64,000 bases of DNA from Podarcis pityusensis (GCA_964106645.2 OZ067038.1), one strand, 5' to 3'; positions 1 through 50,149 are shown, counted from the stretch's first letter. Made by a program: numbers and translations. The notes: a model not told the origin generated them from the sequence alone.

Positions 1-545
1 AAGATGGCGATTGCCACGGCCTCACAGAGCTGCTAGGGACCACCAACAACAATTACATGGTTTGGCTGGTCCCCACGCCACCGACACCACCACCACCGTT
101 GCAAATGGGGGAGAGCCAGGGGAGCCCAATGTGAGAGCCAAAGAGGCCACTTGGAGCCCCCTGTTCCCCAGCAACCTCTGCCCCGGATTGCCCTGACAGC
201 AGCCAAACAGAGCCCGGAGGCCTGGGGAGCTGAGCAAAGAAACTCACCCCTCTCCGGAGCTGAGGAAAGAATGCAGCGGTGCCCCCCATCTGAGCATCCC
301 TCCACGGCCACCACTGCCATTGCCGCCACCACAGGAGGAAGGCAGGAAGGGACTGGGAGACCCAAGGAGGCCATTCGCAGCCTCATGGGTGGCTGGAAAC
401 GGGAGCAGGCCAGGGAGCCGCATGCCGGGGTCATCCTGGGAGGAAGTGCACACTGCGCGAGCCTTTTCCCTTCCAGCGGAGGGGTGCCGGCAGCAGCCAG
501 TGACGGGTACATCAAGCGGCGGTGGTGATGATCTCAGGGAGTGGG

Positions 546-1020
546 CTTGGGCTACCCAATTCAGCTCTTCCCTTGTTATCATTAGACTTAAATTTAAACA
601 ATAACTTTAAATGCAGGGACTTAGTATTTTTTCTATTATCAGCAGCCCAATTAACAGTAGTCGGATACTGGAAACAACCTATAGAAATTCCTATTGCAAT
701 CTGGGTAAATAATATTTGGAATGTGGCTCTATCATGACGCCTTACTCGCCACAGAGGGGTAATTAAAGGCACTTCAAGAATAGACACTTTTGGCGAGACT
801 TGGCTTCCATTCCTTTCGTTTATAAATGAGACAAAAGGTACTTTTATTCCACCCACAATACGAGAATCTCTGTGGAGAGGATGCTTGAATTGATAATGCA
901 TAAATAAACATATTGCTTGCGTACTGTGTTCTACATATGAAACTTAATAAGAATGTACCACTGGACAAGTTACTGTAGTTATATGTTGTTCTTGTATTTA
1001 CATGAAAACCAATAAAAATT
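546..1020 (+). mobile_element. L1 LINE 3' fragment (ORF2 C-terminus and 3' UTR)
   Basis: Translation ...LLSAAQLTVVGYWKQP...W...IWNVALS*...FGETWLPFLSFI resembles the L1 ORF2 C-terminus; ends near AATAAA. Confidence 0.6.
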
Positions 1021-1089
1021 ATTTGGACCCCCCAAAAAGTGGCATTTGTTTTGATTCGCCCCAAACAACACTAAAATCAAGGGTGGGAG

Positions 1090-1495
1090 TCAAGAGGGTG
1101 ATCAAGATGTTCAAGGGTGTGGAAATCAAGCCTTATGAGGAACAGTTGAAGGAGCTGGATATGTTTAGCCTGGAAAAGAGGAAAGAGCCTTGAGAGGAAA
1201 TATAATAGCCATCTTCAGATATCTCAAGAGCTGTCACATGGAAAGTGGAGAAAGCTTGCTTCCTCCTGCTCCAGAGGGTAGGACCCGAACCAATGGCATC
1301 TAGTTACAAGAAGGAGAGTCTGACTAAACATCAGGAAGAGATGTTTGACAGTGAAACAGACTCCCCGGAGAGGTCCTGGACATTCCTTCCTTAGAGGTTT
1401 TTAAACAGAGGGTGGATTGTTAGAGCTAGTTTAGATTCCTGCATTGCAGGGGGTTAGGCTAGATGACCATCAGGGTCCCTTATGACTCTGATTCC
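1090..1495 (+). mobile_element. CR1 LINE 3' fragment, degraded
   Basis: KMFKGVEIKPYEEQLKELDMFSLEKR is a typical CR1 ORF2 end; CR1 3' tail GGGGGTTaGgCTAGATGACC...GGTCCCTT follows. Confidence 0.8.
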
Positions 1496-2100
1496 ACTAT
1501 AACTAGTAAGTCCCATCAGTGAAATTGTGCAAGAGCTTGTGCAAGGTATCTTCCCTTATCCCCCCCCATATGCCCCCAAAATTGCCTTGGAAAGAGGTTC
1601 AGGAGAACCCTTGTAGCAGCGTGCAGCTGGGGGATTGCTTGCCCCAGTAGAATGGTTGCCTTGGAGTGGTGTTCAATGCATCCTCTAGAGCACACATGAA
1701 TGACACGGGCTGATGTTAAGTGGGGCCAAAATGGATCAGGCATATTAGTCTAGACAGGGAAGTTGTAAACTGTGTTCCAGAAAAATGACTTCTGATTCTG
1801 TTAGCTTGTTGTAAGCTCCTTTATCTTACAAGAGGCTTGTAACTTATTGTATTAATATTTTAAAATACAACAGTGTTTGAGTGTATTATTGTCTTGATTG
1901 AAGTCCCCAACCATGCCCAAGAGAAGAGTGACGGAAAACATGGATCAAATATCGAGTCTCCTAAGCTATTCAGAAGAAATGTATTGACTGGAGTGTTGGA
2001 AAATGTTAATTTGCATGTACAAGCATGTCATACTGCTAGACACTGGCAAGATCTCCAGAAATAGATTTCTGGATTTAGATGATGGCTTATAAAAATGCCT

Positions 2101-2232
2101 AGTACTACTTTTCTATAAAAAGAGGGGCCGGAACTCACCATGAAGATCTCCCTTGTTCTCTTATAATGGCAATGGCACCCGCCTGAGAGGGGACTGGCGA
2201 GTTCTGGTGAGCTCCGAATGAAAAAAGCCCTG
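2101..2232. mobile_element. Short non-autonomous hAT-like DNA element; a second copy in opposite orientation lies at ~41658-41789
   Basis: Ends in AAAAAGCCCTG; internal sequence is the reverse complement of the 41.7-kb copy. Confidence 0.55.
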
Positions 2233-2267
2233 CATATGCCGAACACACTTCTGCTTTTCTTGACTCA

Positions 2268-2382
2268 TTTCCCCAGGGAAAACCCACACTTTACCACTGA
2301 ATCGGAGCAAACATCAGTTGGGTTTTCCATGGACTGATGTTTGCTCAGATTTAGCAGTAAAGAGCGAGTTTTCCTGGGGAAA
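2268..2382. repeat. Long imperfect inverted repeat (hairpin), probably a palindromic MITE
   Basis: TTTCCCCAGG-GAAAAC..TTTAC..GAGCAAACATCAGT pairs with ACTGATGTTTGCTC..GTAAA..GTTTT-CCTGGGGAAA. Confidence 0.7.
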
Positions 2383-2703
2383 GCAGCAGGGAAAACAGCT
2401 CAGACCCCTGCTTTCTAGGCACGGGACCAGCAGAGGTGTGGATGAGCCTGAAAGGCAGTGCTGTTGAGCTTGCTCAGATAAAAGAATGAAAGCAAGGAAC
2501 TGAATCAGCAAAGATGTTTACAAAGGATTTCCTGGAATAGAAGTCACGAAACCTCCTTTCCTGTTTCCAGAAATGGCTCCATAATCCCCCCCTGTCATTA
2601 TAGTGTCAACATGGTCAAATAAATCCCTCTTTACGTAGAAGAAATAAGACTAAGATACTTCCAGATTAGCGAGTGATCTTGGAAAGTAAAAGTCCAGTAA
2701 GTA

Positions 2704-2728
2704 AGTGTGTGTGTGTGTGTGTGTGTGT
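2704..2728. repeat. (GT)n microsatellite
   Basis: Seen directly. Confidence 0.95.
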
Positions 2729-3215
2729 CGCTTGAAGGCGCTCAGAGGAGGTGGAAGGAGTAGACTAGGAGAGCAGCAAGCTCTTATATGCAATGACTTT
2801 CATCTTCAGTAAAGAGCAAAATCACTTTTCTCACTTCTTTAAAGAGGACTTGGTCCTCTGTGACAAGCAGTGGTTTTAGATGGGAACTATAACGGCATGT
2901 GACTGGACATAATCCTCTTAGTGTTGTTACATTCCAGCTCTCCACATGGGTTTAGTATAAGCTGGTAGCCTTTCAGATTCAGAGGATAGGTTTGAGATGT
3001 TAGCAAGTGATGGTGTCAGTTTTGCTGGTTAAGGGTAATGCTTGACTGTTAATCCTGCAGCTCAGTGGATCCTGGATCTTCCATTTATGTGGGACTGAGG
3101 CTTAGAATTTCAGTGATATAAATTTTTATTTCCTGCAAGTATACCCTAATAACAGAGTAACTGAAAATGTGTGTGGTGGGTGTTATTCAAGTCTATCTTT
3201 CTCACATATACTCTA

Positions 3216-3365
3216 CCGTATTATTCTGTGTATAAGACTAGGTTTTCCCCCTAAAAAATAATGTCAAAAATTAGGGGGCGTCTTATACACGGGGCCATCT
3301 CCCCCCCATTTTCTTAAATCTGAGTCCCCAAAAACAGGGGGCATCTTATACATGGAAAAATACAG
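3216..3365. mobile_element. Tc1/mariner (pogo/Tc2-like) MITE
   Basis: TA-CCGTATT...TATAAGAC at the left end; TCTTATA...AAAAATACAG at the right end. Confidence 0.65.
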
Positions 3366-3562
3366 CAGTACTCTGTGTAGGAAACTTTATGTACCTTTAT
3401 GAGAACTAAGCCCTGAGTTAACTATTTTGGGGGTTCCTTTTGTCTGTATGTGAATGAAAGGGGTTCAGCAGCTAGAATAAGCAGCCACAAAGTTTTGGGA
3501 ACCTTGCCTTATATACAAAAGTGCTTCCATTTCATAGTGTGTGGATTTTTCTCTCTCTAGAG

Positions 3563-3746
3563 CAGGGGTAGTCAACCTTTTTATACCTAACGCCTACTAA
3601 GGCATCTTTCTTGATGGTAGTTTCCTTACCGCCCCCCAGTGCTCGATGGAAGGAGGATTCAGCTTGTGCCGTAGAACCCCCTACCACCCACCTAGAATCC
3701 TGAAACGCCCACCAGTGGGCGGGAGGAACCAGGTGGACAACCCCTG
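3563..3746. mobile_element. hAT MITE
   Basis: TIRs CAGGGGTAGTCAACC / GGTGGACAACCCCTG; 8-bp TSD CTCTAGAG / GTCTAAAG. Confidence 0.8.
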
Positions 3747-4195
3747 GTCTAAAGAATAGAAGACAGAAGTTTGTGCAAAATTGTAGACATACTGACCGAA
3801 GGTAACCTTCAATATACTTTCATGTTCCAAGCCACAAGACTGAAAAACTGAAAGAGAAATCTGTCCCCATGTTGCTTTCACTTCTAGGTTTGCATCTCAG
3901 TTTGATTCCTGTAATGACTTGGGGAAAGTACCACTGTGCTGCTATGTAATTGATTTCCACTGAAACAACAACCTGTTCCTCATTTAACATTTATTCTTTT
4001 CATAACAAAATGAATGCATATAATTTTCTTTTTCTGATTTCTGACTGTTGGAATCTTGCAACGAACAGCTGCAACTTGATTTAAGTACATTTAATAAACA
4101 TTTTGAAAATCCAGTTTCACGGCAGTTTTCAGTGTGCAAAGTACTTTATTTCTTGTTGATCCCCACAACAATCCCCACAAACGAAAAAACCTGTT

Positions 4196-4325
4196 GGATC
4201 TCTTGGTTGGTTAGAACGTGGTCCTGATAACACCAAAATCTCAGATTTGATCCCCATATTCCTGCATTGCAGCGGGTTGGACTAGATGATTCTCAGGGTC
4301 CCTTTCAATCCTGTGATTTATGGTT
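4196..4325 (+). mobile_element. tRNA-derived SINE with CR1-type 3' tail, degraded
   Basis: tRNA-like head (TTGGTTAGAaCGTGGT..GATAAC..TTtGATCCCC) plus CR1 tail CCTGCATTGCAG.GGGTTGGACTAGATGA. Confidence 0.6.
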
Positions 4326-5970
4326 TTGAACTTCAGTGGTTAATACACTGTATGTCTGTGACTCAGATAATTATATTTGTTGAACTTCACAAGGCCAGTG
4401 AAGTGAGAGGCAGCCAAAAGCAGGATTGCAGGCAGAAATTTCAACAATATTAATTTTAAAATGCTCTCAATAAAACATATATTGCACATATCTAAGTAAG
4501 AAGGTGGGTTACTACATTTTTCAAAATGGCTCCTGACTGCTTTCTTTTATTCTACAACATCACAGTCTTTCCCTTTCCCTATTGAGAAGATGGTTTCAGG
4601 GAGATAATGACATTGGAAAATAAAGTAACCCAAGGACTTGTTAGAGAACTGTGAAAGGCTTTGACACTTGGGTAAATCAGTCACATCTTAAGCGAACATG
4701 AACTTTTTCTTTGAGCCACAGCACAGTACACCAACACAAGGGAAAGAGAACCTAGACCCCAATTATTTAGCCTACGTTCTTTGAAAGAAATCCAAATTTG
4801 GTGTCCCAATTATTGAAGGAACTGTATTCAGTGCTGATGGTGACCTTGCGAGGAGAATGCTACAAAAACTAAGCTTCACGGCACAATGAAGCTGCTCTGC
4901 TGGACTGTCACATCCCACAGTACAAAAGAAGCCAATCTCTTAGTGAGAGAGGAACAGAACATTTGGAGAACAATTATGTACGGTCTGTTGGCATGATGTG
5001 TATTTAAGCCTTTGGTTTTGTGTTTAATTTGGCTTCCGTTTTACATGTAGTACTCTCCTTTATGCATGCATTTGAAATCTTAAGCTCACGGAACAAAAGT
5101 TCTAGAAATTTTGCAGGATAGATATTGGGGATGACTGAGAACTTGGTGTTGTCCATTTCTCCTGGGCAGAAAGGCTGGAGACACAGGGCCATCCCACCCA
5201 TCAGGTGGGGTGAAGCAGCTGCCTCAGGTGGCAGAAACGCAAGAGGCAGTGCCCCCACAGGCATCCTGCCCCAGTGCCACCACCGAAGCAAACCAGGCGA
5301 GGGAGGCTTTGGCAGCCGTGTAGAGTTCTGCCACCCAGAAATGCGGCGGGCGGTGATTTGAGGTTTGCAAAGCTAATCTGTTAAGCTCTTGGATTTTGTA
5401 ATGCTTTTGCCACAATACCTGTAGCCTTAAAGTCTAGAAATGACTGCATAGGTTGTGATAGGATTAAGGCAGTTGATAACATACATAAATATTTTTCTCA
5501 CACTCATTTGAGAGCTTTCTGTGTTGTATATTGATGCTCAGCTGAGCCTGTTGTAAAGCAGAGGTGGGGAACTGCCTGGCCAGCGGGCCAGATCCCTGAG
5601 TCCCCTCTCCTCCATAAGCCAGCTTGGATGGGGGGGGGGGGGCTGGTGTCATGGGATGGACGCCTGTGAAAGTTCAGTAAAGGCGTTGGAGTCCAGCCCT
5701 TTATCTTATTCTGATTCCAGACTGCTCCACAACTGCAGTTTTCTTAAAGTTGTATATTTTCCCCAGTGCTACTCCTGTTGAGCTGTATTATTATATCCAA
5801 AATAGTGTCATTCAGCTAAGATTACAGACTGAAGAAGGGAATTCAAATGCACCCAATTGGTATATGACACAAGAAAGTCATTCAGTTTTTGTTTTATTTC
5901 TTACAGTGTTCTTACAACATTTCTTTTTATGTTGTGAACCACCCTGTGATCTTTGAAGGGCAGTATACAA

Positions 5971-6003
5971 ATTTAATTAATTAATTAATTAATTAATTAA
6001 TAA
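5971..6003. repeat. (TTAA)n microsatellite
   Basis: Seen directly. Confidence 0.9.
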
Positions 6004-7649
6004 TACAATCTGATGTGTTGCCAATTTGGTTTTCCTTTTTTTTTTTTTAAGAATATTTATTCCAATTTTTAAGTTACAAAAAATGAAGAAAAAACAAACC
6101 ATACACATGTTACAAAAAACAGACAATAAAAAAGAAAAAAGAAAAAACAAAGAATCACAATAAAGAATAACAAAAATCAAATTAGACCTTTACAACCTTC
6201 TTCCCTTTTACTTATTTCCATGACTTCCTCTCACCTCCCTGCTTTGTATTCTAGTTTAAATCGTATCTCCAGCAAATCCTTCTAACCTTATTTTCTTTTA
6301 CTTATTTTAACATTCGAAAGTATTTAATTCTCCTCTATCCTCATTTTACACTTCATTTTTACTTATTCCATTATACCATGTCTGCCAGCCAATTTGGTTT
6401 TCCTAATAACTGCTACTTGTGAAATTGTGAGGGGAGTGGTCCTACGGCTGTGGATCTCAAGCATTTTTCAGAGGCCTTATTTTATTTTATTTTATATACC
6501 ATCCTATACCTGCAGGCCTCAGGGTGGTTTACAAGATAAAATTACAATAGAAAAACACAAAGCGCATAATCAAAATAAAAACAAAATAAAAATATAAACA
6601 AAATATAATCAGGAACAGCCTCCCCCGCAACACACATAGTTAAAAACAATTTTAAACAATTTTAAAAACACAATTAAAAAGCAGGTCTTCCTTCCTTGCT
6701 GGGCAAGGAAGTCCGTAGTCTGTCAGGCCCTAGGACTTAAAATTTTCTTATCTCTCTTCTGGACCCAGTAGTCAGGGAAATTAGACTCCTTTTATTCCTA
6801 GCAACATTTTTGTCCCCAACAAAGACAATTTGGGACTGGAAGACACTGTTCAAGATTTTTTGTCTTTCAGTCTTCCTGCCTCACCCCATCAGCCTTAAAC
6901 AGTGGAGACTTATTAGAAGTCTTACTTCTTGCTTCTGTCCTCTTGACATTTTGTTAATGCTGCCGTGCTTTGTCAGTATCCCAAAAAAAGGTTTTGAACG
7001 ATATTTTAGAAACTTGTCCTTCCATAAGAATGGTTTGCATATGTACTTAACAGGAATAATTTTGTATATCACTCTCAAAAGTATGAGCATGCTGAAACTT
7101 GTTATCTAATATGGGCCAGTATTTTTGCTTCCAGTGGAGACCCCCACTTAGTAGTTTCTTTTGTGATTTTTTGGTGCCTCCTAGTGGAGAAATTACACAG
7201 ATCAATGCTATTTGAAGTTAAAAGGAGTAATTGCACAAGTGCCTGCGAAGGAAACTACTTCTATGTGGGACTGCTGTTTGCCAACACAAAGTTCTTGTTT
7301 CTGTGCCAGGCAACGGCACCTTTCTATGTTCTGTCGCCATCTTCTTTCCTCAAATGATTGAGCTCCAATTACAGCTTCTATGTTTCAGTTTCCTTTAGGG
7401 TTGCCATACGTCTGGGAATTCCCGGATGTGTCCTCTTTTGTGGGTCCTACATGCCTGTTGTGGGGGGGATTTTACATTTGGAAGCAATTGTCCTGGATTT
7501 GGGGGTTTTTTATGTGGGTGGGTGGCTCTGGTTGGTTCAGGCTCTGGCTCTGGCACAGGCAGCTTGGGCTTGGACTCTGGCTTGGGCTCGGCAGTGGGGC
7601 TATTGGGTCGACTGCCCTAAAAAAGCTTGCCGCTTCCACTTCCTGGGTA

Positions 7650-9870
7650 TAATAATTCATGCAGCTTTCAATAAATTTGTGAGCAAGTCCTTCATAGCCT
7701 GCGAACCTTCCTATAAATTGATAATAATGCTACTTCTGGATCTTCAGTCAGCTTTAACCCAGTGATTTCTGTTACTTCCTTAAACACCCTTTGCCCCCCA
7801 AATTGTAATTATTTACACCCCCACCACATGTGAACATAATTCCCTGTTTCCTGGCATCAGACCATCTCCAAATTAATTTATAATAATTTTCTTTTATCGA
7901 CTGGACCTAATGGTCAGGGGTCCCTTTACCTTTTTATTCTTATAGACGTTTTCAACGTACGTTTCTCCCATATTTCCCCCCCAGCTTTGACTATCTATTT
8001 GCCATGATGTCTCCTTTTCCCACACCTCTTTTAAGTGATCTTCTTGATCCTCCATTTCTAGCAATATTTTATAAATTTCACTGGTTTCCCCTTTTATAGC
8101 TGTATTTTCTTTTTTAATCTCCCCTTTTAATAATAATTTTTTTACAAATTTTGTATATTCTTTGCAGTTCTTGTTTTCCCTTAACCATTTCTTTGCCCAT
8201 TGCTCCAGTTGTATACAGTTATACCATGTTATTTTACTTCCTATTAGAGCATCTCTTATTTGTTCTTTGCTTCTCATTTTCTCTACCCAATCATTTATTT
8301 TAAGTATTTTCTTCTCTTTCGCTTCTTTCTCAATTTCCTTTTTAAAATTTATCGGGAAGTCTTCTATCATCACCACCAGGGTTAGTGGGGAATTTGCTGG
8401 TATCAATTTTCCTTTATATTTCGCCCATATCTCAATAATATTTTTTAATAAAGGATTTTCAATATTCTGCCACTATTTTCTATTTGGTTTGATAAAAATA
8501 TATATTCACTAACTTCTCCTTCATTTCCTGTGTACCACTCTCTAACCATTCTAACTCTCCCTTGTTCTGTTATCCCATGTATGACATATCTTAACTGATT
8601 TGCTATATAATATAACTTTATGTTAGGGAGCCCCAGTCCACCTAATACTAATACTAATACTAATTCCCCTCATCACTGCTTTTATCCTATATTATTGCTT
8701 GAGTACTTTGGCTCTTCTTATTGATCTCCCATATATCTAATAATTCTTTCCCTATCTTATTTACTGTTATTGAAGATCCTCCTGTCTAACCTCCATCTTC
8801 TGGCTTGCTTGTAATCGTTCTTTATTTTCAATACCATATTAACCAATGTGTGGTCGGTTACCTTTATTATTCCAATTTCCGTATTTGTTATTTTAGAACA
8901 CTACGATTTTTGAAACAAAGATATAATTGATCCTTGAGTAGGTCTTATGCACTGGCGAGAAGAACGAAAATTTATTCTCTCCTCCCCTCATCACTCTCCA
9001 AACATCTTTCATATCTTGCCTTTTCATAATTTTAGCTAATCTTGTAATTGTTATTACATCTTTCCTCTGGAGTAGGATTTGACTTATCCAGTCATTTATC
9101 TAATACCATATTGAAATCTCCTGCCATAACCATATAACCCTTTTGAATACCCTCCATTTCCTTAAACACTTCATCAAAAAATTCCCTCTGATTTTCATTG
9201 GGAGCATAAATATTAATTATAGTGTATTCTTCCCCCGCCATTGTTCCCTGAATTATAATGTATCTTTCCTCAGGATCTTTCTTCATCTTTAATATACTAA
9301 ACCTGCATCTCTTTGAAATTATAGTTGCTATCCCTCTTGATTTTGAAGTACCATATGCTTTTTCATAATTATTTATACCTCTCAGTCTGAGTTCATTAAC
9401 AGCCTCTTTCATCTGATGCGTTTCCTGTAAAAATATTATAACTTCTTTATCTTTATTCAGTAATGTTTTTATCCTCCTTTTCATAATCGACCCCAGCCCT
9501 CTAATGTTTCAGGTTGAAATCCTTATTTCATTATCAATGAGTTAAATGTACTTCTTAATTTCTGGTCTCGTGTCTTATGATACTTATAGAACCCATTACC
9601 CATCCCATTCAATCCCCTCCCCATCCCTCCCACCCCTCCCATACCCATACATTCCATTTTGTCTTCCCCCCTATTTTCCTGAGCTATTTCACCTCTCCCA
9701 TTGTCCTAATTGTTGTTGTGGGGGGGGCGGGGGGGGGGGGCTCCTCTGATCACGGAGCCACAGCAGAACTTCTTCTCCCATTATGTTTGTTATGTCTTCA
9801 CTCTGATATAATTTCGTTCAGCCTTTACTTTCAGTCCTCAATAGTCATTTTTTGTCTCCTGCCACCCCCA
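7650..9870 (-). mobile_element. L1 LINE with endonuclease and ORF2 C-terminal region; RT domain deleted
   Basis: ORF 9092-9484 has APE motifs FLQETH, INIYAPN and GDFN; EN end WRL..IF (~8790) runs directly into post-RT GLGLPNIKLYY (~8640); ORF 7894-8406 is ORF2 C-terminal region. Confidence 0.85.
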
Positions 9871-10011: not shown

Positions 10012-10324
10012 TAGAGGAGGGAGAAAGGTTGTTTTCTGCTGCTCCAGAGAAGCGGACACGGAGCAATGGATCCAAACTACAAGAAAGAAGATTCCACCTA
10101 AACATTAGGAAGAACTTCCTGACAGTAAGAGCTGTTTGACAGTGGAATTTGCTGCCAAGGAGTGTGGTGGAGTCTCCTTCTTTGGAGGTCTTTAAGCAGA
10201 GACTTGACAACCATATGTCAGGAGTGCTCTGATGGTGTTTCCTGCTTGGCAGGGGGTTGGACTCGATGGCCCTTGTGGTCTCTTCCAACTCTATGATTCT
10301 ATGATTCTATGATTCTATGATTCT
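10012..10324 (+). mobile_element. CR1 LINE 3' end, young
   Basis: RTRSNGSKLQERRFHLNIRKNFLTVRAV region, CR1 3' UTR and (ATTCTATG)n tail. Confidence 0.9.
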
Positions 10325-11613: not shown

Positions 11614-11785
11614 CTTCTGAACCCCAAGAGCAGTACCCAATTTCTTCTGTTCCTCTTCATCTTACATGCCCCACCCCATTTCAGTGTGATTTTGATTTGC
11701 TTTTCTTGCTCATCCTTCCACTTTTACAGCAACACTTTCTGCAGCAAAACAGGCAGCACTTCAGTCAGATAAATAGGGCAAGGAG

Positions 11786-12223
11786 TGTCGGTTGCAAGCC
11801 CCCTGCACAGAGGCTGGCTCCTCTCACTGTCCTCAGAGCTTGCTTACCGGTAACCTCCTCTGGCTGACATCCAGACAGACCAGGGAGATTTTGATAGGCG
11901 ACATTTTCCCAAGAGTGGGTAAAATGCACAACCCCTCTCTCCTGCCTTCGCAGGGGAAAGAAAATAAGTCAGAAATCTATTTACATGATGTTTATTTCTG
12001 ACATTACAGCACTAGAGAAAAACACGTCCTTTCAGTTCAGTTCTTCCAGCACGTCAGGCAAACTTCCTGAACATGCGCACACAGAAGGTTTCAAGTTACA
12101 CTCTTCACAAAGACTTATCCAGCCTGTGAACGTCCTGGGAAATTCTTCTTTCCCACAGATAGGCACATCATGTGATGTCAACAATCTGGCTGTCTGCAGC
12201 GGTGATGTTTCCATATACTGACA
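11786..12223 (-). repeat. 3' LTR (438 bp)
   Basis: Direct repeat of 15189-15627; I count 6 transitions and one 1-bp indel; AATAAA on the - strand at 11991-11996. Confidence 0.96.
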
Positions 12224-12232
12224 TCCTCCCCC
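12224..12232 (-). promoter_or_regulatory. Polypurine tract
   Basis: GGGGGAGGA immediately upstream of the 3' LTR. Confidence 0.9.
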
Positions 12233-12382
12233 ATATGAATCATTGTTAGCTGCGGACAAAGCTTGATCCAGAGAAGAAAACAAACAGTTGTTATACATAT
12301 AACAATCCCCTGTTGTTTCAGTTCCACCCTTGGAACTACCCGCCACTGGTTTCACCAATGTAACTCTCTGGTTGTCTGTTTT

Positions 12383-13483
12383 TCAAGGAACTAGTGCATC
12401 TGCATTACCTTGGCTAGGAAATATAGTGTTACGCTTAGCAACTACCTGTTGTGTCTTTGTCTCTGACTTAGACATACCCTTAACCTGGCTTGAGTTGTCA
12501 GCAATAGTAATACATGCAACAGCTGAACTAGCAAACTCTTGAGAATACCTCTTTGGTGGTACGCCCTTTGTGATTCTCTCAGACCTGCGTATGAGGTGCT
12601 GATCCTCTTTGCTGACTGGTTCAGTCTCAGGACTTTTCGAAGAACCAGTTCCAATAGTAAACAGTGGTTCATCCTTAACCTGTGAAGATCTAGCTTTTGT
12701 GTGTGAACCTTTCTCAATAACTGTGTCAACAGAACTCTCTGAGCTTTCTGTGTCACTTTCAGTATCACTATAATCAGAATAATCAAATTCATCATCTGAA
12801 TCATCAGCAGTGGGAAATGTGTGAAAAATTACTCTCTCCTGTCCAGGAGCACTCTCTAGAAATTTTGTGAGAATCACCTGACCAGATTCAGACAAAATTA
12901 CTCTGTAGAGACTCTTTTCATAACCCTCAAAAATGCCTCTGGCATTCTTCACCCCATCTGGAGTTTCCGTCCTGATTTGAGATCCAAAAACCTTAAAATG
13001 TGAGACAGAAGGTTTTCTGCGGAATAGCCTCTCAAAAGGAGAACATTCCATACCCTTTGAAACCTTTCTCACCCAAGTGTAACAAAAACATGATAAAGAT
13101 TCAGCGCAATACTCATGTGGCAAGTGTGAACTCAGCAATTGTGCCTTCATGCCATTCTGCAACACTCTGTTCACTTTTACACACACAGTTTTCTTCCATG
13201 CAGCCTCTGAAACAGCAACCTTGTGCTCTATCCCTTGCTTCTCCAGGAAATCCTGAAAATCCTGTGAAAGAAAAATTGGTTTCTCATCTGTGAAAAGAAA
13301 ATCAATTTTAGCATCATGAATATTCTTAACCTTATCACAAAACTCCTTAAGCCTTTCTAAGGTTTCTCTGGGATTCTGCAACATGTAAATCCATACATAT
13401 TGAGAAAAATGATCAACAAATACAAGATAGTATTTTGCATTGCCTCTAGATGGTGCTAAAGGACCAATTACATCAGCATACAC
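12383..13483 (-). CDS. Copia integrase core, SH3-like region and acidic linker; catalytically degenerate; continues the upstream frame after one TGA
   Basis: VYADVIGP, YYLVFVDHFSQYVWIY, FTDE, SPFERLFRRKPSVSHFKVFG, ARGIFEGY..YRV, IRRSERITKGVPPKRY; no YVDD RT motif follows. Confidence 0.85.
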   Translation of the reverse strand: MYADVIGPLAPSRGNAKYYLVFVDHFSQYVWIYMLQNPRETLERLKEFCDKVKNIHDAKIDFLFTDEKPIFLSQDFQDFLEKQGIEHKVAVSEAAWKKTVCVKVNRVLQNGMKAQLLSSHLPHEYCAESLSCFCYTWVRKVSKGMECSPFERLFRRKPSVSHFKVFGSQIRTETPDGVKNARGIFEGYEKSLYRVILSESGQVILTKFLESAPGQERVIFHTFPTADDSDDEFDYSDYSDTESDTESSESSVDTVIEKGSHTKARSSQVKDEPLFTIGTGSSKSPETEPVSKEDQHLIRRSERITKGVPPKRYSQEFASSAVACITIADNSSQVKGMSKSETKTQQVVAKRNTIFPSQGNADALVP

Positions 13484-14620
13484 TCACTGAAAAAGACTGT
13501 TAATCTTTGTTGCCTTTCCTCTTGTGTCTTCTTTCAAGATACCTGCAAGAGAAAGCATTTTAGATTCACATGCTGTGCACATTTTATAGTCCGATTCCTC
13601 AAATGTCAACAGATACAGTCCATCTTTCTCTCTGGCAGAAAGATACAGCTCTCCATCTTTGTAGATTTTGCAGCTTTCCTCATCATAGGATAACACCAGT
13701 TTCTTCTTAGTTATTTGAGAAACACTCAGCAAATTGTACTTGAAATCTGGAACAAAATAAACATTGTTTATAGTCAAGTTCAGGCTTTCTAGATACACAG
13801 TTCCGATCCCGGTCGCTTCCATTTCCTGACCATTGGCCAGTTTCACAGTGAAGCGTTGCTTCTCAAACGTAGAAAACAGTTCCCGGCGTGATGCCATGGG
13901 TTGCGTCGCTCCTGTGTCTACAATAAATGAGTTCTCCACGGATGATGTGGCTTTTAGTGACATCAAAGCCATATCTGGTTTTGCCTGGGACTGGATACGA
14001 CCTTTGCTTGAAGCCTCAGGCTTTACAGAGCTCCCTCTAGCTCCTTTCTCTCCTTTCTCCTGACGTGGTGTCTCCTGACGAACAGCGTTCTGAGCTACAG
14101 CTTTCTCCTCTGTAGCAATTGTAGTGGGGGTGCTAGATTTCCAAACTTCACTCCCCCCCTCAGCAACAGCCATTGCAGCAGTGCTAGGATCATCAACAGC
14201 AACAGCAGCAACCGTCCCTTCACTTCCTTGTTGTGGCTCAAAGCTCCTCCCAGCTTTCGATGAGCTCTCAAGAATTTGGCTAGCTTCATCTTGGCTTTCC
14301 CCCTTTGGCGCAACCAATTCTCGGTCCTTGCTTCCCACCCCAGCTTCACAAGCTTTGCGGAGTGACTCCCAAGTGACCCTTGGTTCTGCTGCACCCTTTA
14401 GGACTGGCTCAAGATAAGCGTCCACATTTTCCGCCAAAATTCTCAGGACACGCTGCTTCAATTCACTTTGAACTGCAGCCTTCTTCCCCTGTGCTTGTAC
14501 AGCACCAGGCTGTGGGGTTTGTACTAAGTCCCATAATTGCTCTCCCACCAGCAAGAATTCCATTGCAAATGACCATTCTAGCCAGTTTTGGCTATTCAGT
14601 TTCTGAGAGAACAGAGCTAT
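13484..14620 (-). CDS. Copia Gag-like N-terminus and aspartic protease
   Basis: Frame is open upstream of the tracked Met: QKLNSQNWLEWSFAMEFLLVGEQLWDLV (copia Gag start); protease IVDTGAT..VKLANG..GIG..VYFVPDFKYNLLSVSQI; start codon uncertain (ATA at 14620 or ATG at 14563). Confidence 0.85.
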   Translation of the reverse strand: MALFSQKLNSQNWLEWSFAMEFLLVGEQLWDLVQTPQPGAVQAQGKKAAVQSELKQRVLRILAENVDAYLEPVLKGAAEPRVTWESLRKACEAGVGSKDRELVAPKGESQDEASQILESSSKAGRSFEPQQGSEGTVAAVAVDDPSTAAMAVAEGGSEVWKSSTPTTIATEEKAVAQNAVRQETPRQEKGEKGARGSSVKPEASSKGRIQSQAKPDMALMSLKATSSVENSFIVDTGATQPMASRRELFSTFEKQRFTVKLANGQEMEATGIGTVYLESLNLTINNVYFVPDFKYNLLSVSQITKKKLVLSYDEESCKIYKDGELYLSAREKDGLYLLTFEESDYKMCTACESKMLSLAGILKEDTRGKATKINSLFQ

Positions 14621-15168
14621 CTTTATCCCAAGCTGCAGCTTCAGCTACAAGCTGGAAAATCCAATAGTCTATTGGGCTGTTTACAAGCTGCTTGCACATG
14701 GCAGTCAGCCCAGCTGCCTGGAATTTTCCCCTTCCACAGAATCTGTAAACAACAAGCCTTCGCTGCAATCCAACAGCAATCAGCAAGGTGCACTCTGCTT
14801 TGGAAAGTCCCCTTTCCAACTGTTTGTTTACAACAAGCGTCGCTGAAAAACACCCAGCCTTGCTTTCGCTTTTGAAGCTTTTTTCTCTCTCTATGCTCTT
14901 TAAGCTAACCAGCTCATAAATTTTAGCTCAAAAAGTACTCACGACTTGTCGCATAGCAACGGAACTTCTTATCAGCTCTGGAATGCGAAGTATGTGGCCT
15001 CTCTCCGCTCTGTTTTATCCAAAACAGGAGCTTTTTTCTCAGTGAACCGAAGACTTTTCAATTCGTGTTCACCATCCAGCCATAAATCAGCATCGCAGAG
15101 GTCCGTGGATCGCGGCTTATCAGCAAAAAAAATGTCTCCCACCTGGTGCTCATCCGTCTTGTTGTTGC

Positions 15169-15186
15169 AACCATCCTCTGCTACCA
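15169..15186 (-). promoter_or_regulatory. Primer binding site for initiator tRNA-Met
   Basis: TGGTAGCAGAGGATGGTT is complementary to the 3' 18 nt of vertebrate tRNA-iMet (AACCAUCCUCUGCUACCA) and lies 2 nt from the 5' LTR. Confidence 0.92.
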
Positions 15187-15188
15187 CT

Positions 15189-15627
15189 TGTCGGTTTGCA
15201 AGCCCCCTGCACAGAGGCTGGCCCCTCTCACTGTCCTCAGAGCTTGCTTACCGGTAACCTCCTCTGGCTGACATCCAGACAGACCAGGGAGATTTTGATA
15301 GGTGACATTTTCCCAAGAGTGGGTAAAATGCACAACTCCTCTCTCCTGCTTTCGCAGGGGAAAGAAAATAAGTCAGAAATCTATTTACATGATGTTTATT
15401 TCTGACATTACAGCACTAGAGAAAAACACGTCCTTTCAGTTCAGTTCTTCCAGCACGTCAGGCAAACTTCCTGAACATGCGCACGCAGAAGGTTTCAAGT
15501 TACACTCTTCACAAAGACTTATCCAGCCTGTGAACGTCCTGGGAAATTCTTCTTTCCCACAGATAGGCGCATCATGTGATGTCAACAATCTGGCTGTCTG
15601 CAGCGGTGATGTTTCCATATACTGACA
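15189..15627 (-). repeat. 5' LTR (439 bp)
   Basis: TG..CA termini; direct repeat of 11786-12223; adjacent to the PBS. Confidence 0.96.
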
Positions 15628-16721
15628 AGGAGTACAACAGCCAGGAGGAAGGCAATGACGTCAATAGAGTGATACTGGATCCAGTAGAGGTCATGTGCTG
15701 CCGGCCTCAAGTGGGGAGCCCCCTTGTGCTTCATCACAAACTCCACCCAATGCACCGCAAGGTCAAGAGGTTCAATGGGCCTGTCCAGGTGGAGAGCTGA
15801 GAGATGCTGGATGTTCTCTTTATACCTAAAAGAAAGGAACCTCTTTAGGAAATAAATATTACAGGGAAATAAAACACACAGCATATAGGAGCAGATTTCC
15901 AAAGCATTTGAAATCCAAGTGGAGTTGATACTGTTCTGAGAGACTGGGGACATGGGATGCAAACCCCTCCCCTGTTCCTGTGTGTGCAGATACTTCGGGA
16001 TACTCTGTATACAGCTTATACAGGGTGACTGAGGCCAGAGTTCCAATGCTTTTAGTAGCTGAACCCTAAGTTTTCTCTGGTGGATCTTTCACATAGCTGA
16101 TCTGTCTCCTACGTGACAGCTGCTGCTAATCACAGGTCCTTGGAGATAAAAATGGAGAATGATGCAGTGTCCAGGAACTTCTGTGGGGCAACTGATGATA
16201 CTGGTGACCACCAGCAGGTGGCAGTTGGAGGAGGGATGATCTCAGTCAGTGTCTCTTAAAGACAGAATGTGGCCTGCTGAGGGAAGCAGGAGCTGGTAGG
16301 TAGTCAAGAACAGGGCCACTTCCCAATGTGGAAGGAGATGCCCCCTGCCTTCACTGCTGCTTCCTGACATTTCCTCCAAGGCTGTCCTTTTCCATTCCCT
16401 TCAGTTGCCCCACAGTGACTGTGTAAACTGGAAATAGGATGGTATGAATCAGCACAGGGTATAATAACAAACAGCAGATTTGCTGGCAACCCTTGGCAGA
16501 AACAGCGTTGCCAAGGAGCAAAGATGGAATATTGTGCAGGACAGTGGTTTGCGATTGTTATGGAATGCTTTCCAGATTAACCTGTCTGTGAAGGAACCCC
16601 TGGAAACTCCTGTGCATTATGGAGGATTTTGGAGAATACTCCAGGGCACTTGGCTCACCTGGAGCACTGGCGCGGCTTCTTGGCCCTCCCCCCTGCCCCC
16701 ACTTATTGTTAGAAGATACTC

Positions 16722-17878
16722 ATAGAATCATAGAGTTGGAAGAGACCACAAGGGCCATCGAGTCCAACCCCCTGCCAAGCAGGAAACACCATCAGAGCAC
16801 TCCTGACATAGAAATCCATGCTGACTATTGGTGATCACAGCATTCCTTTCTAGGTGCTCACAGACTGTTTGCTTAATGATCTGCTCCAGAATCTTCCCTG
16901 GTATTGATGTCAGACTGACTGGGCGGTAATTATTTGGGTCCTCTCTTTTCCTCTTTTTGAAAATAGGGACAACATTTGCCCTCCTCCAGTCTGCCGGGAC
17001 TTCGCCTGTTCTCCAGGAATTCTCAAAGATGACTGCCAGTGGTTCTAAGATCACATCTGCCAGTTCTTTTAATACTCTTGGATGCAGTTCATCTGGCCCT
17101 GGAGACCTGAATACATCTAAACTAGCCAAGTATTCTTGTACTATCTCCTTAGTTATTCTGGGCTGTGTTTCCTTTGCTGAATCATTTGCTCCAAATTCTT
17201 CAGGTCAGGCATTGTTTTCTTTATCGGAGAAGACTGAGGCAAAGAAGGCATTGAGGAGTTCAGCCCTTTCTGTGTCCGCTGTTTGCATTTCACCATCTTC
17301 TCCTCTGAGTGACCCCACTGTTTCTTTGTTCTTCCTTTTGCTACGAACATACCCATAAAAGCCTTTTTTGTTGCTTTTAACCTCTCTAGCAAGCCTGAGT
17401 TCATTCTGTGCTTTAGCTTTTCTGATTTTGTGTCTACACGTGCTGGCTATTTGTTTGAATTTCTCTTTGGTGGTTTCCCCCCTTTTCAATTTTTTGTACA
17501 CATCCTTTTTTAATCTTAACTCAGTTAAAAGTTCTTTAGATAGCCACCCTGGCTTCTTTAGGCACCTTCCATGCTTCCATCTCATTGGTATTGCCTGAAG
17601 TTGTGCTTTTACTATCTCCCTCTTAATAAACTCCCAGCCATCATGAACTCCCTTTCCTTTTAGTATTACTGTCCATGAGATCTCACCCAGCACTTCCCTA
17701 AGTTTTATGAAGTCGGCTTTCTTAAAGTCAAGAAATTGAGTCCTAGTATGCTTGGCTGCTCCTTTCCACTGTATAGTAAACTTCAGAAGAGCATGATCAC
17801 TCGCGCCTAATGATCCTTCCACTTCTACCCCACTAACCAGGTCATCAACATTGGTTAGGACCAGATCTAAAATGGCTA
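16722..17878 (-). mobile_element. CR1 LINE, 5' truncated and internally deleted
   Basis: [15 protein letters not shown] (EN end), SPGPDELHPRVLKEL, NYRPVSLTSIPGK, QHGF, then a jump at ~16810 to the CR1 3' UTR and ATTCTATG tail. Confidence 0.92.
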
Positions 17879-46420: not shown

Positions 46421-47389
46421 GAAAAGCTTGGCCTATCACTCAATAGCCAAAAAATGAAAGTGCTGCACCAACAAACACAAAACAACCCCTCCGCAGCACC
46501 ACAGATCCAACTTAATGCTGTAACGGTGGAAAGTGTTGATCACTTTTCCTACCTGGGCAGTTATCTTTCCACAGGGGCTGACATCAGTGCTGAAATCCAG
46601 CATTGCCTGAGCTCTACGAGTGCAGCTTTCTCCCAATTGAAGCACAGAGTGTTTCAGGACCGGAACATTCACAGGGAGACCAAAATACTTGTTTACAAAG
46701 CTATTGCACTGCCAACTTTACGGTACGCTTGTGAAACATGGACCACTTATAAACGCCATCTGATGGATAGATTCCATCAACGGTGTCTCTGAAAATTTTT
46801 ACATATCACTGGGGAAGACAGGCGAACTAATGTCAGTGTACAAGAAGAAGCAAAGATCACCAGTGTCAAAGCGATGATTCTTCAACATCAACTTTGTTGG
46901 ACTGGTCATGTTATTCGGATGCCTGATTATTGTTTTCCAAAGCAACTACTTTATTCTCAACTTAAGAATGGAAATTGAAATGCTGGTGGACAACAAAAGA
47001 AGTTTAAAGACACTCTCAAGGCAAATATAAAAAAATACAGTATAAGCACGTATAATTGGGAAACACTGGCCTGCAAGTGCTCCAATTGGAGAATAGCCTC
47101 TACCAAAAGCATCATGGACTTTGAAGAAGCTCAAACTCAGGAATAAAAGGGAGAAATGTGCTAAGAGGAAGGCATGTTTGGCAAATCCTCACCGTGACCA
47201 ACTCCTGCCCAGAAACCTATGTCCTCAATGTGGAAGGACATTTGGATCCAGAATTGGCCTCCATTGTCACCTATGGACTCACTGTTAAGACCATATTCAT
47301 GGAAGACAATCTTAGTCGGCTATGAGTGATTGCCAAAGAAGAAGAAGAAGAAGAAGAAGAAGAAGAAGAAGAAGAAGAAGAAGAAGAAG
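45805..47389 (+). mobile_element. RTE-clade LINE RT and 3' end with (AAG)n tail; an L2 3' end is nested at ~46240-46420
   Basis: LQEKC..PLYMVF.ELTKAF, LQYADD, FSYLGS, YACETW, C-terminal CPQCGR..IGL..H; (AAG)n at 47336-47389. Confidence 0.88.
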
Positions 47390-48486
47390 ACAGTCTTGCT
47401 GTATGGTGAAGATAGTTAATCTGTCCTCCCAACTACCATGGCCATACAGCCAATCTTCTGGATATTTCTGTCTTTAAACTGCTCTGCCACTGTAGCCATG
47501 ACACTTTGGATATGGATGGAACTATGGTGGCAGCCATTTACTTATACCTAGAATAGTCCTCAGCTAGTGAAAATAAGTCTCTCACTGAAGCCTCTGCTGT
47601 GTGGTATGTTGTCTTCCTCCTTTCCCAATTGAGTCACAGAAAGTGGCCTCAGTATACTTCTTGGTCTGAGGTGGTGATGTCTTGCTTAAATGGAAAAGTC
47701 CCAATAAAATCCTGGGGCAAGGTCAATTCTCTGAGATAGCATTGCTGTCAAAATTTAATTTGCCATCATATTGAGGCCTTGGTGTAGTGTTGATTCAAGG
47801 GGCAGAGGAGGTACACCACCTGAACTGCCAAACACCACGGAACTGTGGTCTTTCCTGGCTATAGATCTAGGGAGAATATACTTCTGTTTCTCTTTTGCTT
47901 TTTATTTATCCTAGGTTATTTTCCATCATGCTAGACTTCCTTGAGTTCTTTCACTGCTGTGAGATGTTTGACTACTTGTCTAAGATTTTGTTCAAGACAT
48001 AACAACTGGTGTTTAATCAGTGGCTGAAACTAACCACACAAAGAGAGAAGTGAATAATTCCTTTTGATGTGAAGCTGCCATCCAACCCACATGACATCTC
48101 TTGTAAATACTATTAGAGATGGAGTCTTTTGGTTATTTGATGTCAATTCTATAACTGGCCATTTCGCAGTTGTCTCATTTAAAAACAGAAAGTTCTTGTC
48201 ATATTAGCTCCTGAGAATGATATCGTTTCAGTCAAGTTTAATCAAACTGTCGATGGGGGAGGCTTTCCATGTACATTTCAACCTACAGTGAGATGCACCC
48301 AGGTTTTCTCCTTATCCTTTCCCTGTATGTGTGAGTTGTGCAGTGCAAAAAGAAAGCATGCAATACACTTGTCCTGTGTGTGCTCAACCCTATATTTGGC
48401 ATTCATGTGTCAGTGATTCTTCATTGCCAGACCCTTCATGGCCCCAATCAACTGCAACCACTGATTAGTTTTCCCCATGAAAAGTA

Positions 48487-48935: not shown

Positions 48936-49716
48936 TAGTCCCATTCCTTCTAGTAATACTGATGTTGCCATGCTGTCAATCATGTATGATGATGTCACTG
49001 AGGGTAAATGAAGTTCAGAGTGAGGGTACTGTCTATGCAAAAGTTGGCGTCATTTGCTCTTGGTGAAATAGTCATATTACCAAATCTGAGTGGCTGTATG
49101 ACAAAACTAATAGGGAGAAAGAAGACATACTTTTAAACAAAAATGGTACTGAAGTTAACTGCTAATTGGGACTGTGAGCCTATGAGCAACAGCAAATAGT
49201 TTTGGGAAAGGTAAATTTTGGGGGACATTTCAGAAATCTCCCACTGCAGAAAGCTCTTATTTGTATCCAACATGTTCACTGGAGAAATTCTGCTCACTAT
49301 CCCTATTGATGGAAGCTTCAAAAAAGAAAACCAGACATCCTTCTGATGGTGTGATAGTATGCAAGAATTTGAAGAAATTGTGGTAGGCTTTTTCGTTACT
49401 TCTAATTTAAGGACTGATTTAAAATAGTTTATATAAAAAGCACCATTGATAAGATTAAAAAGCAGAGCTAAAATAACTCTATGTTTATCCAAAGATGACT
49501 AAATGTTCCCAAATTAAAATAGTCTTACACTGAACATTTCTTCCAGATCTGCTGAAAACTCTCAAACTAGGGTTGCAATGAGCCAAGAAGAGGACATCTT
49601 CACTGACTTCTAACTATGGGTCATGGTGATGACTCTCTTTTAAAATGCTTCTCCTATATGTAGGCTATAGAAGCTGCAATATATTGCTAATAGCCATGTT
49701 CTTGACTTTCCATGGC

Positions 49717-49773
49717 AGAAGAAGAAGAAGAAGAAGAAGAAGAAGAAGAAGAAGAAGAAGAAGAAGAAGAAGA
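49717..49773. repeat. (AAG)n microsatellite
   Basis: Seen directly. Confidence 0.95.
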
Positions 49774-50149
49774 CAGATATTTGTATTTATGTGATGGTGT
49801 CAACATGGGAAAGTAATGAGAGATCAGGAATTTGTAGTGCAAGTGATCATATTGGTTGATGTGTAATCATCTTACAAGGGTACCTTTGACCTTGAAGCCT
49901 ATGTGAAAATATCCATATGCTGTTCATGTGATTTTTTAAAATGAGAGGTTGAATCACCTGTCTTGAATGCTTGAGCTGAGATTCCTGCAAAGCAGGGGGC
50001 TGCATTAGATGAGGCTTGAAGTCCCATCCAACTCTACCATTCTATGATTCTATGAATGCTGGGGGGGGGGGAGGTTTAAGAATCATATGGATGAAATTGA
50101 ATTTGAACTGAACATGAACCAAACTACCAAACACACCAGACAACAATAA

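Follow-up and report, generated by a model that had tools for sequence, protein, structure and literature searches.

The 64,000-nucleotide stretch of Podarcis pityusensis DNA analyzed here (GCA_964106645.2 OZ067038.1, hereafter the window) carries, at positions 11786-15627 on the minus strand, a complete Ty1/copia-type long terminal repeat (LTR) element that encodes no reverse transcriptase (RT) and only an inactivated integrase. We interpret it as an inactive copy of an old, still recently active RT-less copia lineage of lacertid lizards that is mobilized in trans by complete copias, and we put the probability of this reading at about 0.8. Copies in three lizard species inherited the RT-less, dead-integrase state from a common ancestor, and the element moved in that form.

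The element was read directly from the sequence. Its LTRs begin with TG and end with CA, and the two are separated by six substitutions, every one a transition and three at CpG sites, and by one 1-nt indel, a divergence of 1.4%. The internal region is 2.96 kb. An earlier note on this DNA, made from the sequence alone, had described these LTRs as about seven events apart and had listed an intact target site duplication (TSD), AGGAG, primer binding site (PBS) and polypurine tract (PPT); direct reading and alignment of the LTRs confirmed all of these. Together with the 5-bp TSD and the PBS and PPT, the domain order (Pol_BBD, rve, SH3_retrovirus, then remnants of RT and RNase H) places the element in the Ty1/copia superfamily, and its protein groups with copia polyproteins. 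We take the PBS to be the complement of the 3' end of the vertebrate initiator tRNA-Met (tRNAiMet). The features, from the 5' to the 3' end of the element, are as follows.

15628-15632, no strand: right TSD, AGGAG, read directly.
15189-15627, minus: 5' LTR, 439 nt, TG..CA, from alignment to the 3' LTR.
15186 to 15170, minus: PBS, TGGTAGCAGAGGATGGT, 2 nt after the 5' LTR; recurs in copies from P. lilfordi (L001) and Zootoca vivipara (L002) and in an autonomous copia (L004).
14645-15169, minus: 5' untranslated leader, with stops in all frames and with most of the well-supported 1-2-nt indels between copies.
14339-14644, minus: N-terminal part of Gag, KLNSQNWLEW...WESLRKACEAG, from a weak DUF4219 match and alignment.
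13928-14338, minus: C-terminal tract of Gag, Ala/Ser/Glu-rich and without a CCHC knuckle (knuckle site 14060-14089), from alignment to the P. muralis protein P0163.
13700-13927, minus: aspartic protease/Pol beta-barrel (Pol_BBD), with VDTGAT at 13904-13927.
13487-13699, minus: pre-integrase region, from alignment; a deletion of about 60 alignment columns removes the HH half of the HHCC zinc finger and leaves C-x2-C at 13556-13618.
13484-13486, minus: internal stop codon, private to the window copy.
13064-13483, minus: pseudo-integrase catalytic core (rve).
12818-13021, minus: SH3-like C-terminal integrase domain (SH3_retrovirus).
12407-12817, minus: acidic disordered region, predicted local distance difference test (pLDDT) score below 50, and linker RRSERITKGVPPKRY at 12545-12589.
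12236-12406, minus: tail, with what remains of the RT N-terminus at 12341-12406 and of RNase H at 12236-12340, from alignment to the autonomous P0166 and PmA proteins.
12232 to 12224, minus: PPT, GGGGGAGGA, abutting the 3' LTR; the same or a near-identical tract occurs in L003, L004 and the autonomous P. muralis copies.
11786-12223, minus: 3' LTR, 438 nt, TG..CA, aligned to 15189-15627.
11781-11785, no strand: left TSD, AGGAG, the pentamer being repeated at 15628-15632.

The main frame runs from 14563 to 12386 on the minus strand and comprises 727 codons with the single internal stop at 13484-13486, in keeping with the frame of about 2.2 kb and one stop described earlier. Its terminal stop (12383-12385) lies 53 codons past the linker, where the earlier count was about 50, and the PPT comes next; in complete elements this linker sits ahead of RT. 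In Pfam searches of the window protein, the protease barrel was recovered as Pol_BBD (1.8e-20), and its DTG motif is retained, as had been noted. The rve match reached 26.5 bits, below the cut-off of 32.6, and SH3_retrovirus (2.1e-5) was also sub-threshold. The same searches gave no match to RVT_2, zf-CCHC or Retrotran_gag_2. What is left amounts to about 40 RT-derived and about 35 RNase H-derived codons; these recognizable remnants in the tail after the linker add to the earlier description. An exact-sequence look-up of two window ORFs returned no match.

The integrase is dead on every point that the earlier note had raised, all of which can be read in the sequence. The first Asp of the core is kept (VYADVIGP, 13460-13483). 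The second is kept as well, with loss of the GGEF that follows it: the window protein reads FTDEKPIF (13271-13294) where autonomous relatives have FTDRGGEF. The catalytic Glu is replaced by Val in WKKTVCVKVN (13169-13198), corresponding to QNGLCERVN in autonomous relatives. With the HH half of the zinc finger deleted and this Glu replaced, neither the HHCC finger nor the D,D,E triad of an autonomous copia is complete. The deletion of the HH half is common to the P. lilfordi and Zootoca copies and does not occur in L003, L004 or PmA.

Despite these losses, the pseudo-integrase still models as the two-domain fold of retroviral integrases. In a structure model built on a 13-row alignment, residues 1-140 had pLDDT values of 80-96 and the strand and helix order of an RNase H-like core. 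A beta-domain after the core had values of 70-80, and the remainder was disordered. The best PDB matches in Foldseek were two-domain Rous sarcoma virus integrase and prototype foamy virus integrase, with values of 1e-11 to 1e-12.

Protein searches yielded few lizard matches, and our comparisons use few copies, but those matches were decisive. L001, from P. lilfordi, is a 3.6-kb element with 2 mismatches between its LTRs over about 460 positions; one of its ORFs encodes a copia Gag, and another, of 593 aa, runs from protease to tail. L002, from Zootoca vivipara, is a 3.2-kb element with one LTR mismatch and an uninterrupted 869-aa ORF. L005, from P. muralis, contains a copy of the window's own subfamily that is 93-94% identical over element positions 1-2979, is split by nested insertions, and carries the same Gag tract and pseudo-integrase motifs as the window copy; it ends at position 2979, upstream of the RT/RNase H deletion junction. 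The same locus holds the RT-bearing copias PmA and PmB and an unrelated RT-less element, PmC. PmA has an intact 1366-aa ORF with an RVT_2 match of 231 bits and LTRs identical over 388 aligned bases, and PmB is nested in a window-subfamily copy. Logan ERR14657248 yielded L003, another RT-less element, whose integrase is intact; the RT-bearing relative of L003, at 67% identity, is L004 (P0166, 1338 aa; ENA ERZ27260045, a metagenome assembly).

In a six-way alignment, the window, P. lilfordi and Zootoca copies share the loss of the HH half, the change of Glu to Val (..CVKVN) and the loss of GGEF. They also share their breakpoints. In all three, RT is cut just ahead of the RLVARGF motif. Of the sequence beyond, a short stretch of RNase H (..TSG.CYMYN.C.F) and one more fragment (SS.(D/E)..L.A) remain before the PPT. 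The breakpoints of L003 differ, RT being cut about 40 codons earlier; L003 also keeps the pol C-terminus (PADMLTK..LQLC), out of frame past its stop. In a maximum-likelihood tree from 768 shared columns, with stops entered in the alignments as gaps or X, a single clade unites the window copy with those from P. lilfordi and Zootoca (support 100/100). This RT-less clade is sister to a group made of L003 with L004 and PmA with PmB, and PmC falls outside. On this tree, the RT-less state takes at least three independent losses among lizard copias.

Because the changes listed in the earlier note are shared by the window, P. lilfordi and Zootoca copies, they predate the split of the subfamilies. The proposal that the element moved in its RT-less, dead-integrase, remodeled-Gag form is therefore borne out by the shared deletions and Glu loss and by the single clade. 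The nearest RT-bearing relatives are only about 31-34% identical to the window protein, far from the >95% identity to elements with RT and an intact DDE triad that would mark an ordinary decayed copy. The proposal of a non-autonomous family with an open frame also held, since the 869-aa Zootoca ORF is intact, domains are constrained (see below) and the window stop is private.

The family is multi-copy. Related contigs had a summed depth of 100-9000 in two DNA runs in which the flank had 9-25, and the 3' LTR alone had a summed read depth at least 100 times that of the flank in two runs. The LTR pairs of the window, L001 and L002 copies are 98.6-99.7% identical. We thus find what, by the criteria of PMC9744471, characterizes a non-autonomous or semi-autonomous element, namely an RT-less, multi-copy population with young insertions; it is represented by three further copies, of which the one from P. 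muralis does not itself include the RT region.

In PmC (L005:21950-24730, minus), the 926-aa ORF is intact and covers Gag, CCHC, protease, HHCC and the integrase DDE triad. The LTRs of PmC differ at 4 positions, and it is inserted in a non-LTR retrotransposon. We considered it as a relative of the window clade and rejected it on the basis of its different LTR ends and PBS and its separate position on the tree. Of the copia Gag domain, PmA (L005:4001-8101) retains the first half alone; it lacks CCHC and carries a 99-nt tandem repeat in Gag. An element that encodes RT and has a reduced Gag thus lies next to RT-less elements whose Gag is full. In the Zootoca locus, the 3' LTR is followed by a second PBS-like stretch and leader (L002:5865-5900), which suggests a tandem or recombinant arrangement in which two copies share one LTR.

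We also considered whether the RT deletion arose by reverse transcription of a spliced RNA, since Drosophila copia is known to make a spliced subgenomic RNA. This idea was dropped because the window clade has three separate deletions. It was also unsupported by L003 and L004, the only close pair of RT-less and autonomous elements, whose junction is too diverged for splice sites to be recognized.

In the window protein, the copia Gag domain stops after about 95 residues. The Gag start of the family maps to 14618-14620, 19 codons upstream of the ATG at 14563; the window copy has no start codon there, while the P. muralis copy has Met at the homologous position. The earlier note had described a remodeled Gag in which an Ala/Ser/Glu-rich tract takes the place of the CCHC knuckle. 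The absence of the knuckle stands. The tract aligns at 60% identity to the P. muralis relative P0163, whose CYNCGQTGHL coincides exactly with a gap of 10 residues in the window protein, and is a diverged Gag C-terminal linker, not an insert. Since the knuckle-less tract is shared by the P. muralis subfamily copy and by contigs in runs X10 and X15, it is a trait of the subfamily. A full Gag, knuckle included, is retained in Zootoca by the copy studied and in P. lilfordi by other copies.

The earlier note had named dN/dS among copies as a check. We computed pairwise Nei-Gojobori (NG86) values with 95% bootstrap confidence intervals (CI) for the window copy against the P. lilfordi copy, a path that lies wholly inside the RT-less clade.

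Overall, 569 codons: dN/dS 0.31 (CI 0.24-0.39).
Protease: 0.17 (CI 0.08-0.30).
Pseudo-integrase core: 0.29 (CI 0.18-0.43).
SH3: 0.18 (CI 0.08-0.35).
Acidic region and linker: 0.45 (CI 0.27-0.75).
RT/RNase H remnant tail: 0.94 (CI 0.41-2.71), with dS only 0.16; this serves as an internal neutral control.

With values well below 1, the protease, the pseudo-integrase core and SH3 show clear purifying selection at a time when the lineage was already RT-less. Within the window subfamily (window against P. muralis copy, 643 codons) omega was 0.52 (CI 0.34-0.79), a figure that includes the post-insertion decay of both copies. The intact-integrase pair L003/L004 had an overall dN/dS of 0.12, a stronger constraint than in the RT-less clade. 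Small indels among related contigs in three runs agree with an open frame: the best-supported ones cluster in the 5' untranslated region, and among those listed (18 further exist) the only one in the coding region is a 9-nt in-frame change. A dN/dS near 1 with frequent frameshifts, as simple decay would leave, is thus not what these copies show.

The tail (12236-12406, which contains the terminal stop) behaves differently, its protein evolving neutrally while its DNA is strongly conserved. The 100 nt just 5' of the PPT (12278-12377) are 95% identical in nucleotide sequence to the P. lilfordi copy. Elsewhere the two subfamilies are 60-85% identical, and the LTRs, leader and Gag of the window and P. 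lilfordi copies cannot be aligned. These 100 nt are also the bin of highest read depth (9092 in X10). Their conservation suggests either a cis-acting sequence or a recent recombination tract.

The lineage lost RT and most of RNase H by internal deletions, and integrase catalysis as well, so that the element, which has every cis signal and no polymerase, can neither copy nor insert itself; the lineage nevertheless went on transposing. In the mechanism that we propose, its RNA, with intact LTRs, a tRNAiMet PBS and a PPT, would be reverse-transcribed by the RT/RNase H and inserted by the integrase of complete copias in the same genome. The element's own polyprotein (the N-terminal part of Gag, the protease and the inactive integrase scaffold) may help that RNA to enter or use helper particles, with the inactive integrase acting as a non-catalytic structural or adaptor subunit. 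The element's own proteins, which in most subfamilies include Gag, would raise the chance of being copied, through co-assembly with helper particles or recruitment of their enzymes. The helper would probably be a lineage like L004, with the same PBS, a one-base difference in the PPT and similar LTR ends.

In P. muralis, intact autonomous copias, which are young, and a window-subfamily copy occur in one locus (L005), with PmB nested in the subfamily copy. The terminal signals of the RT-less clade and of the candidate helpers compare as follows.

LTR 5' end: TGT(T/C)A(G/C) in the RT-less clade; TGTTAG in PmA/PmB; TGTTAG in L004.
LTR 3' end: ..CCAACA or ..CCGACA in the RT-less clade; ..CCAACA in PmA/PmB; ..TCAACA in L004.
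PPT: GGGGGAGGA in the window copy, GGGGAGTA in L001 and GGGGAGA in L002; GGGGGAGGA in PmA/PmB; GGGGGAGTA in L004, one base off GGGGGAGGA.
PBS: tRNAiMet 3' end in the RT-less clade; GGTTTCGGGCCCAG in PmA/PmB; tRNAiMet 3' end in L004.

In PmA/PmB, the PBS is similar to the internal site on tRNAiMet that Drosophila copia uses. The earlier note had looked to an autonomous copia with related LTR ends and PBS. L004, from a metagenome assembly, has the same PBS and similar LTR ends, and PmA/PmB match in their LTR ends only. Conserved PBS, PPT and LTR termini shared with an autonomous element of the same genome are the published criteria for a partner (PMC9744471). By these criteria, and as far as terminal sequences can tell, an L004-like lineage would be a better helper candidate than PmA/PmB.

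Several observations weigh against mobilization in trans with a selected protein. The P. lilfordi copy has nearly identical LTRs and yet carries frameshifts in the Gag/CCHC region. Because it moved despite them, an intact ORF is not needed in cis for every mobilization; it follows that the proteins can act in trans and that selection falls on the lineage rather than on every copy. Gag is truncated and knuckle-less in the window subfamily, which makes a Gag-based role in cis-packaging doubtful there. As to helpers, PmA/PmB share the PPT and LTR ends with the window copy and differ in the PBS, and L004, which matches in the PBS, comes from a metagenome assembly. Within the 64-kb window we found no second copy of the element and no autonomous copia that could be a helper from its own genome. 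RNA reads (run X24) match the element only at 88-95% and mostly in part, and 92% of the placed reads run on into unlike sequence; for both reasons they derive from relatives. Lastly, dS is high in some domains (0.85-1.1) for pairwise NG86 estimates on few copies.

A more specific proposal is that the dead, zinc-finger-less integrase is a selected non-catalytic adaptor or scaffold and that lacertid copias form a community with division of labor. We regard this as possible but tentative. One type would be RT-less with a mostly full Gag including the knuckle: the Zootoca copy, P0162 from P. lilfordi, PmC and L003 (L001, unlike P0162, has Gag frameshifts). A second would encode RT with a truncated, knuckle-less Gag, as PmA does. 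The window subfamily would be a third, doubly dependent form.

The frame might instead be open for reasons at the RNA level only, such as avoidance of nonsense-mediated decay, with the protein being functionless. The frame does end only a short way before the PPT, and that of relatives extends into the LTR; the P. lilfordi copy was mobile in spite of its Gag frameshifts, and the tail is constrained in DNA and not in protein. However, selection against stops alone would give a dN/dS near 1 throughout, whereas the protease, core and SH3 stand at 0.17-0.29 with the tail, in the same frame, at about 0.94. The integrase fold is also retained at high model confidence, and we consider this explanation unlikely.

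It is also quite improbable that the protein opposes the helper, the second of the two purposes suggested in the earlier note, or benefits the host, as a dominant-negative Gag-protease-pseudo-integrase directed against autonomous copia. A dead integrase without its N-terminal domain is the type of subunit that could poison multimeric complexes, and it is under purifying selection. But the compared sequences belong to mobile copies, which have LTRs and TSDs and occupy non-orthologous sites, and do not represent a host gene fixed in single copy, and the window insertion is absent from related genomes. Selection among transposing copies favors transposition rather than host defense. The features of a domesticated gene are likewise lacking in an element that has LTRs and a TSD, is multi-copy and is missing from two related genomes.

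That a complete copia simply lost RT, the zinc finger and the catalytic Glu after inserting here is hardly credible and is refuted by the shared breakpoints: the copy does bear post-insertion damage (the private stop and missing start codon, with LTRs 1.4% apart), but its deletions and substitutions recur in separate copies from P. lilfordi and Zootoca within one clade, the Gag tract and pseudo-integrase motifs recur in the P. muralis copy, contigs of independent runs share the structure, 1.4% LTR divergence cannot yield an amino-acid difference of about 66-69% from the nearest RT-bearing relatives, and assembly duplicates of the window locus are excluded by the differing flanks and 25-60% divergence of the other copies.

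Non-autonomous elements known as large retrotransposon derivatives (LARD) and terminal-repeat retrotransposons in miniature (TRIM) have LTRs, a PBS and a PPT and are mobilized in trans, with no coding capacity. The window element is like them in its LTRs, PBS and PPT. It is unlike them in its 727-codon frame, which has recognizable domains and protein-level constraint. Its autonomous lacertid relatives, P0166/L004 and PmA/PmB, belong to the same superfamily and to its sister clade, have LTR ends TGTTAG..CAACA, and share the linker RRSER.TKG.PPKR with it. They differ in having the HHCC finger, an intact DDE triad, RVT_2 and RNase H, and they are 27-34% identical to the window protein in amino acids.

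Partly coding non-autonomous LTR retrotransposons have been described mainly in plants, where they keep only Gag or Gag-protease. In Triticeae, the semi-autonomous gypsy elements RLG_Sabrina_SA, RLG_WHAM (GAG-protease only) and RLG_Quinta (GAG plus an unknown domain) are cross-mobilized by RLG_Wilma or RLG_Cereba (PMC9744471, PMC11302176). The lizard element resembles them in lacking RT and integrase function while keeping an intact partial ORF, and in being old, high-copy and split into subfamilies. A further likeness is that the Triticeae elements are thought to borrow the enzymes of a partner while giving their own structural proteins. However, those are plant Ty3/gypsy elements whose integrase coding sequence is wholly lost, whereas the lizard element is a vertebrate Ty1/copia with a full-length dead integrase fold (core and SH3) under purifying selection. 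According to the summary in PMC9744471, BARE2 of barley is a copia with a defective Gag start that uses the Gag of BARE1. The lizard element is similarly a copia that relies on a close relative for one function with the rest of the ORF kept. BARE2, as described there, lacks Gag expression and retains RT and integrase; the lizard element has lost RT and integrase activity and keeps part of Gag, the protease and an integrase scaffold.

Active, complete copia elements in squamates are already known (PMC4657000). In the searchable literature, with Repbase and Dfam outside our scope, we found no description of an RT-less Gag-protease-integrase copia in squamates. Compared with the described plant systems, what differs is the copia superfamily, the vertebrate host, the full inactive integrase fold under purifying selection and the recurrent loss of RT. 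The protein-level constraint is seen across subfamilies in Podarcis and Zootoca and points to a non-catalytic role of integrase in retrotransposition, which has been debated for retroviruses and Ty1. Loss of RT with Gag, protease and integrase kept, at least three times in lizard copias, suggests a favored rather than an accidental configuration. If the adaptor or scaffold reading were true, these elements would be a natural system in which the structural and catalytic roles of a retroelement integrase are separated.

The window copy itself is dead today because of its private internal stop and its missing Gag start codon. At position 13486, nearly all related contigs in three runs carry another letter, and the triplet at 13484-13486 is a sense codon in both the P. 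muralis and the P. lilfordi copy. Contigs from runs X2 and X10 that match the flank with 1-2 mismatches in 147 nt cease to match at precisely the LTR boundary, beyond which they run on through about 800-900 nt of other sequence, as expected of an empty site. Since it is absent from these two related genomes, the insertion is lineage-specific or polymorphic. The LTR divergence of 1.4%, under a rough rate assumption, points to an age on the scale of a few million years at most. The earlier description of the element as recently mobile holds to the extent of that divergence, but only in a relative sense, as the loss of the start codon and the gain of a stop in this copy came afterwards.

The insertion lies in the last coding exon of a UDP-glucuronosyltransferase (UGT) gene (15628-16046 and 11650-11785, minus; Pfam UDPGT, 1.8e-35), inside the C-terminal transmembrane helix. 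Such elements are a source of recent exon insertions. Left of the insertion the exon reads LLALFI*LKCCLFCCRKCC..KSKSH*, and its in-frame stop at 11765-11767 is independent of the insertion. The UGT copy may therefore be truncated or a pseudogene regardless of the element.

A practical matter is that RT-less elements are being annotated as host genes. In public annotation, RT-less copia ORFs (P0009, P0162, P0163, P0167) are either named as proteins of the host or joined to models of host genes. Among the names given are 'FAM168A isoform X1' for Zootoca (L002), 'vomeronasal type-2 receptor 26-like' for Podarcis and 'uncharacterized protein LOC144324910'.

Among several dispersed repeat families of the window (D3-D8, I1-I4) is a 91-nt inverted pair with 100% identity, whose arms (10214-10304 and 16720-16810) lie on either side of the UGT exon and the element. 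Two long (GAA)n microsatellites (47311-47411 and 49694-49803) lie 2.3 kb apart and have similar flanks.

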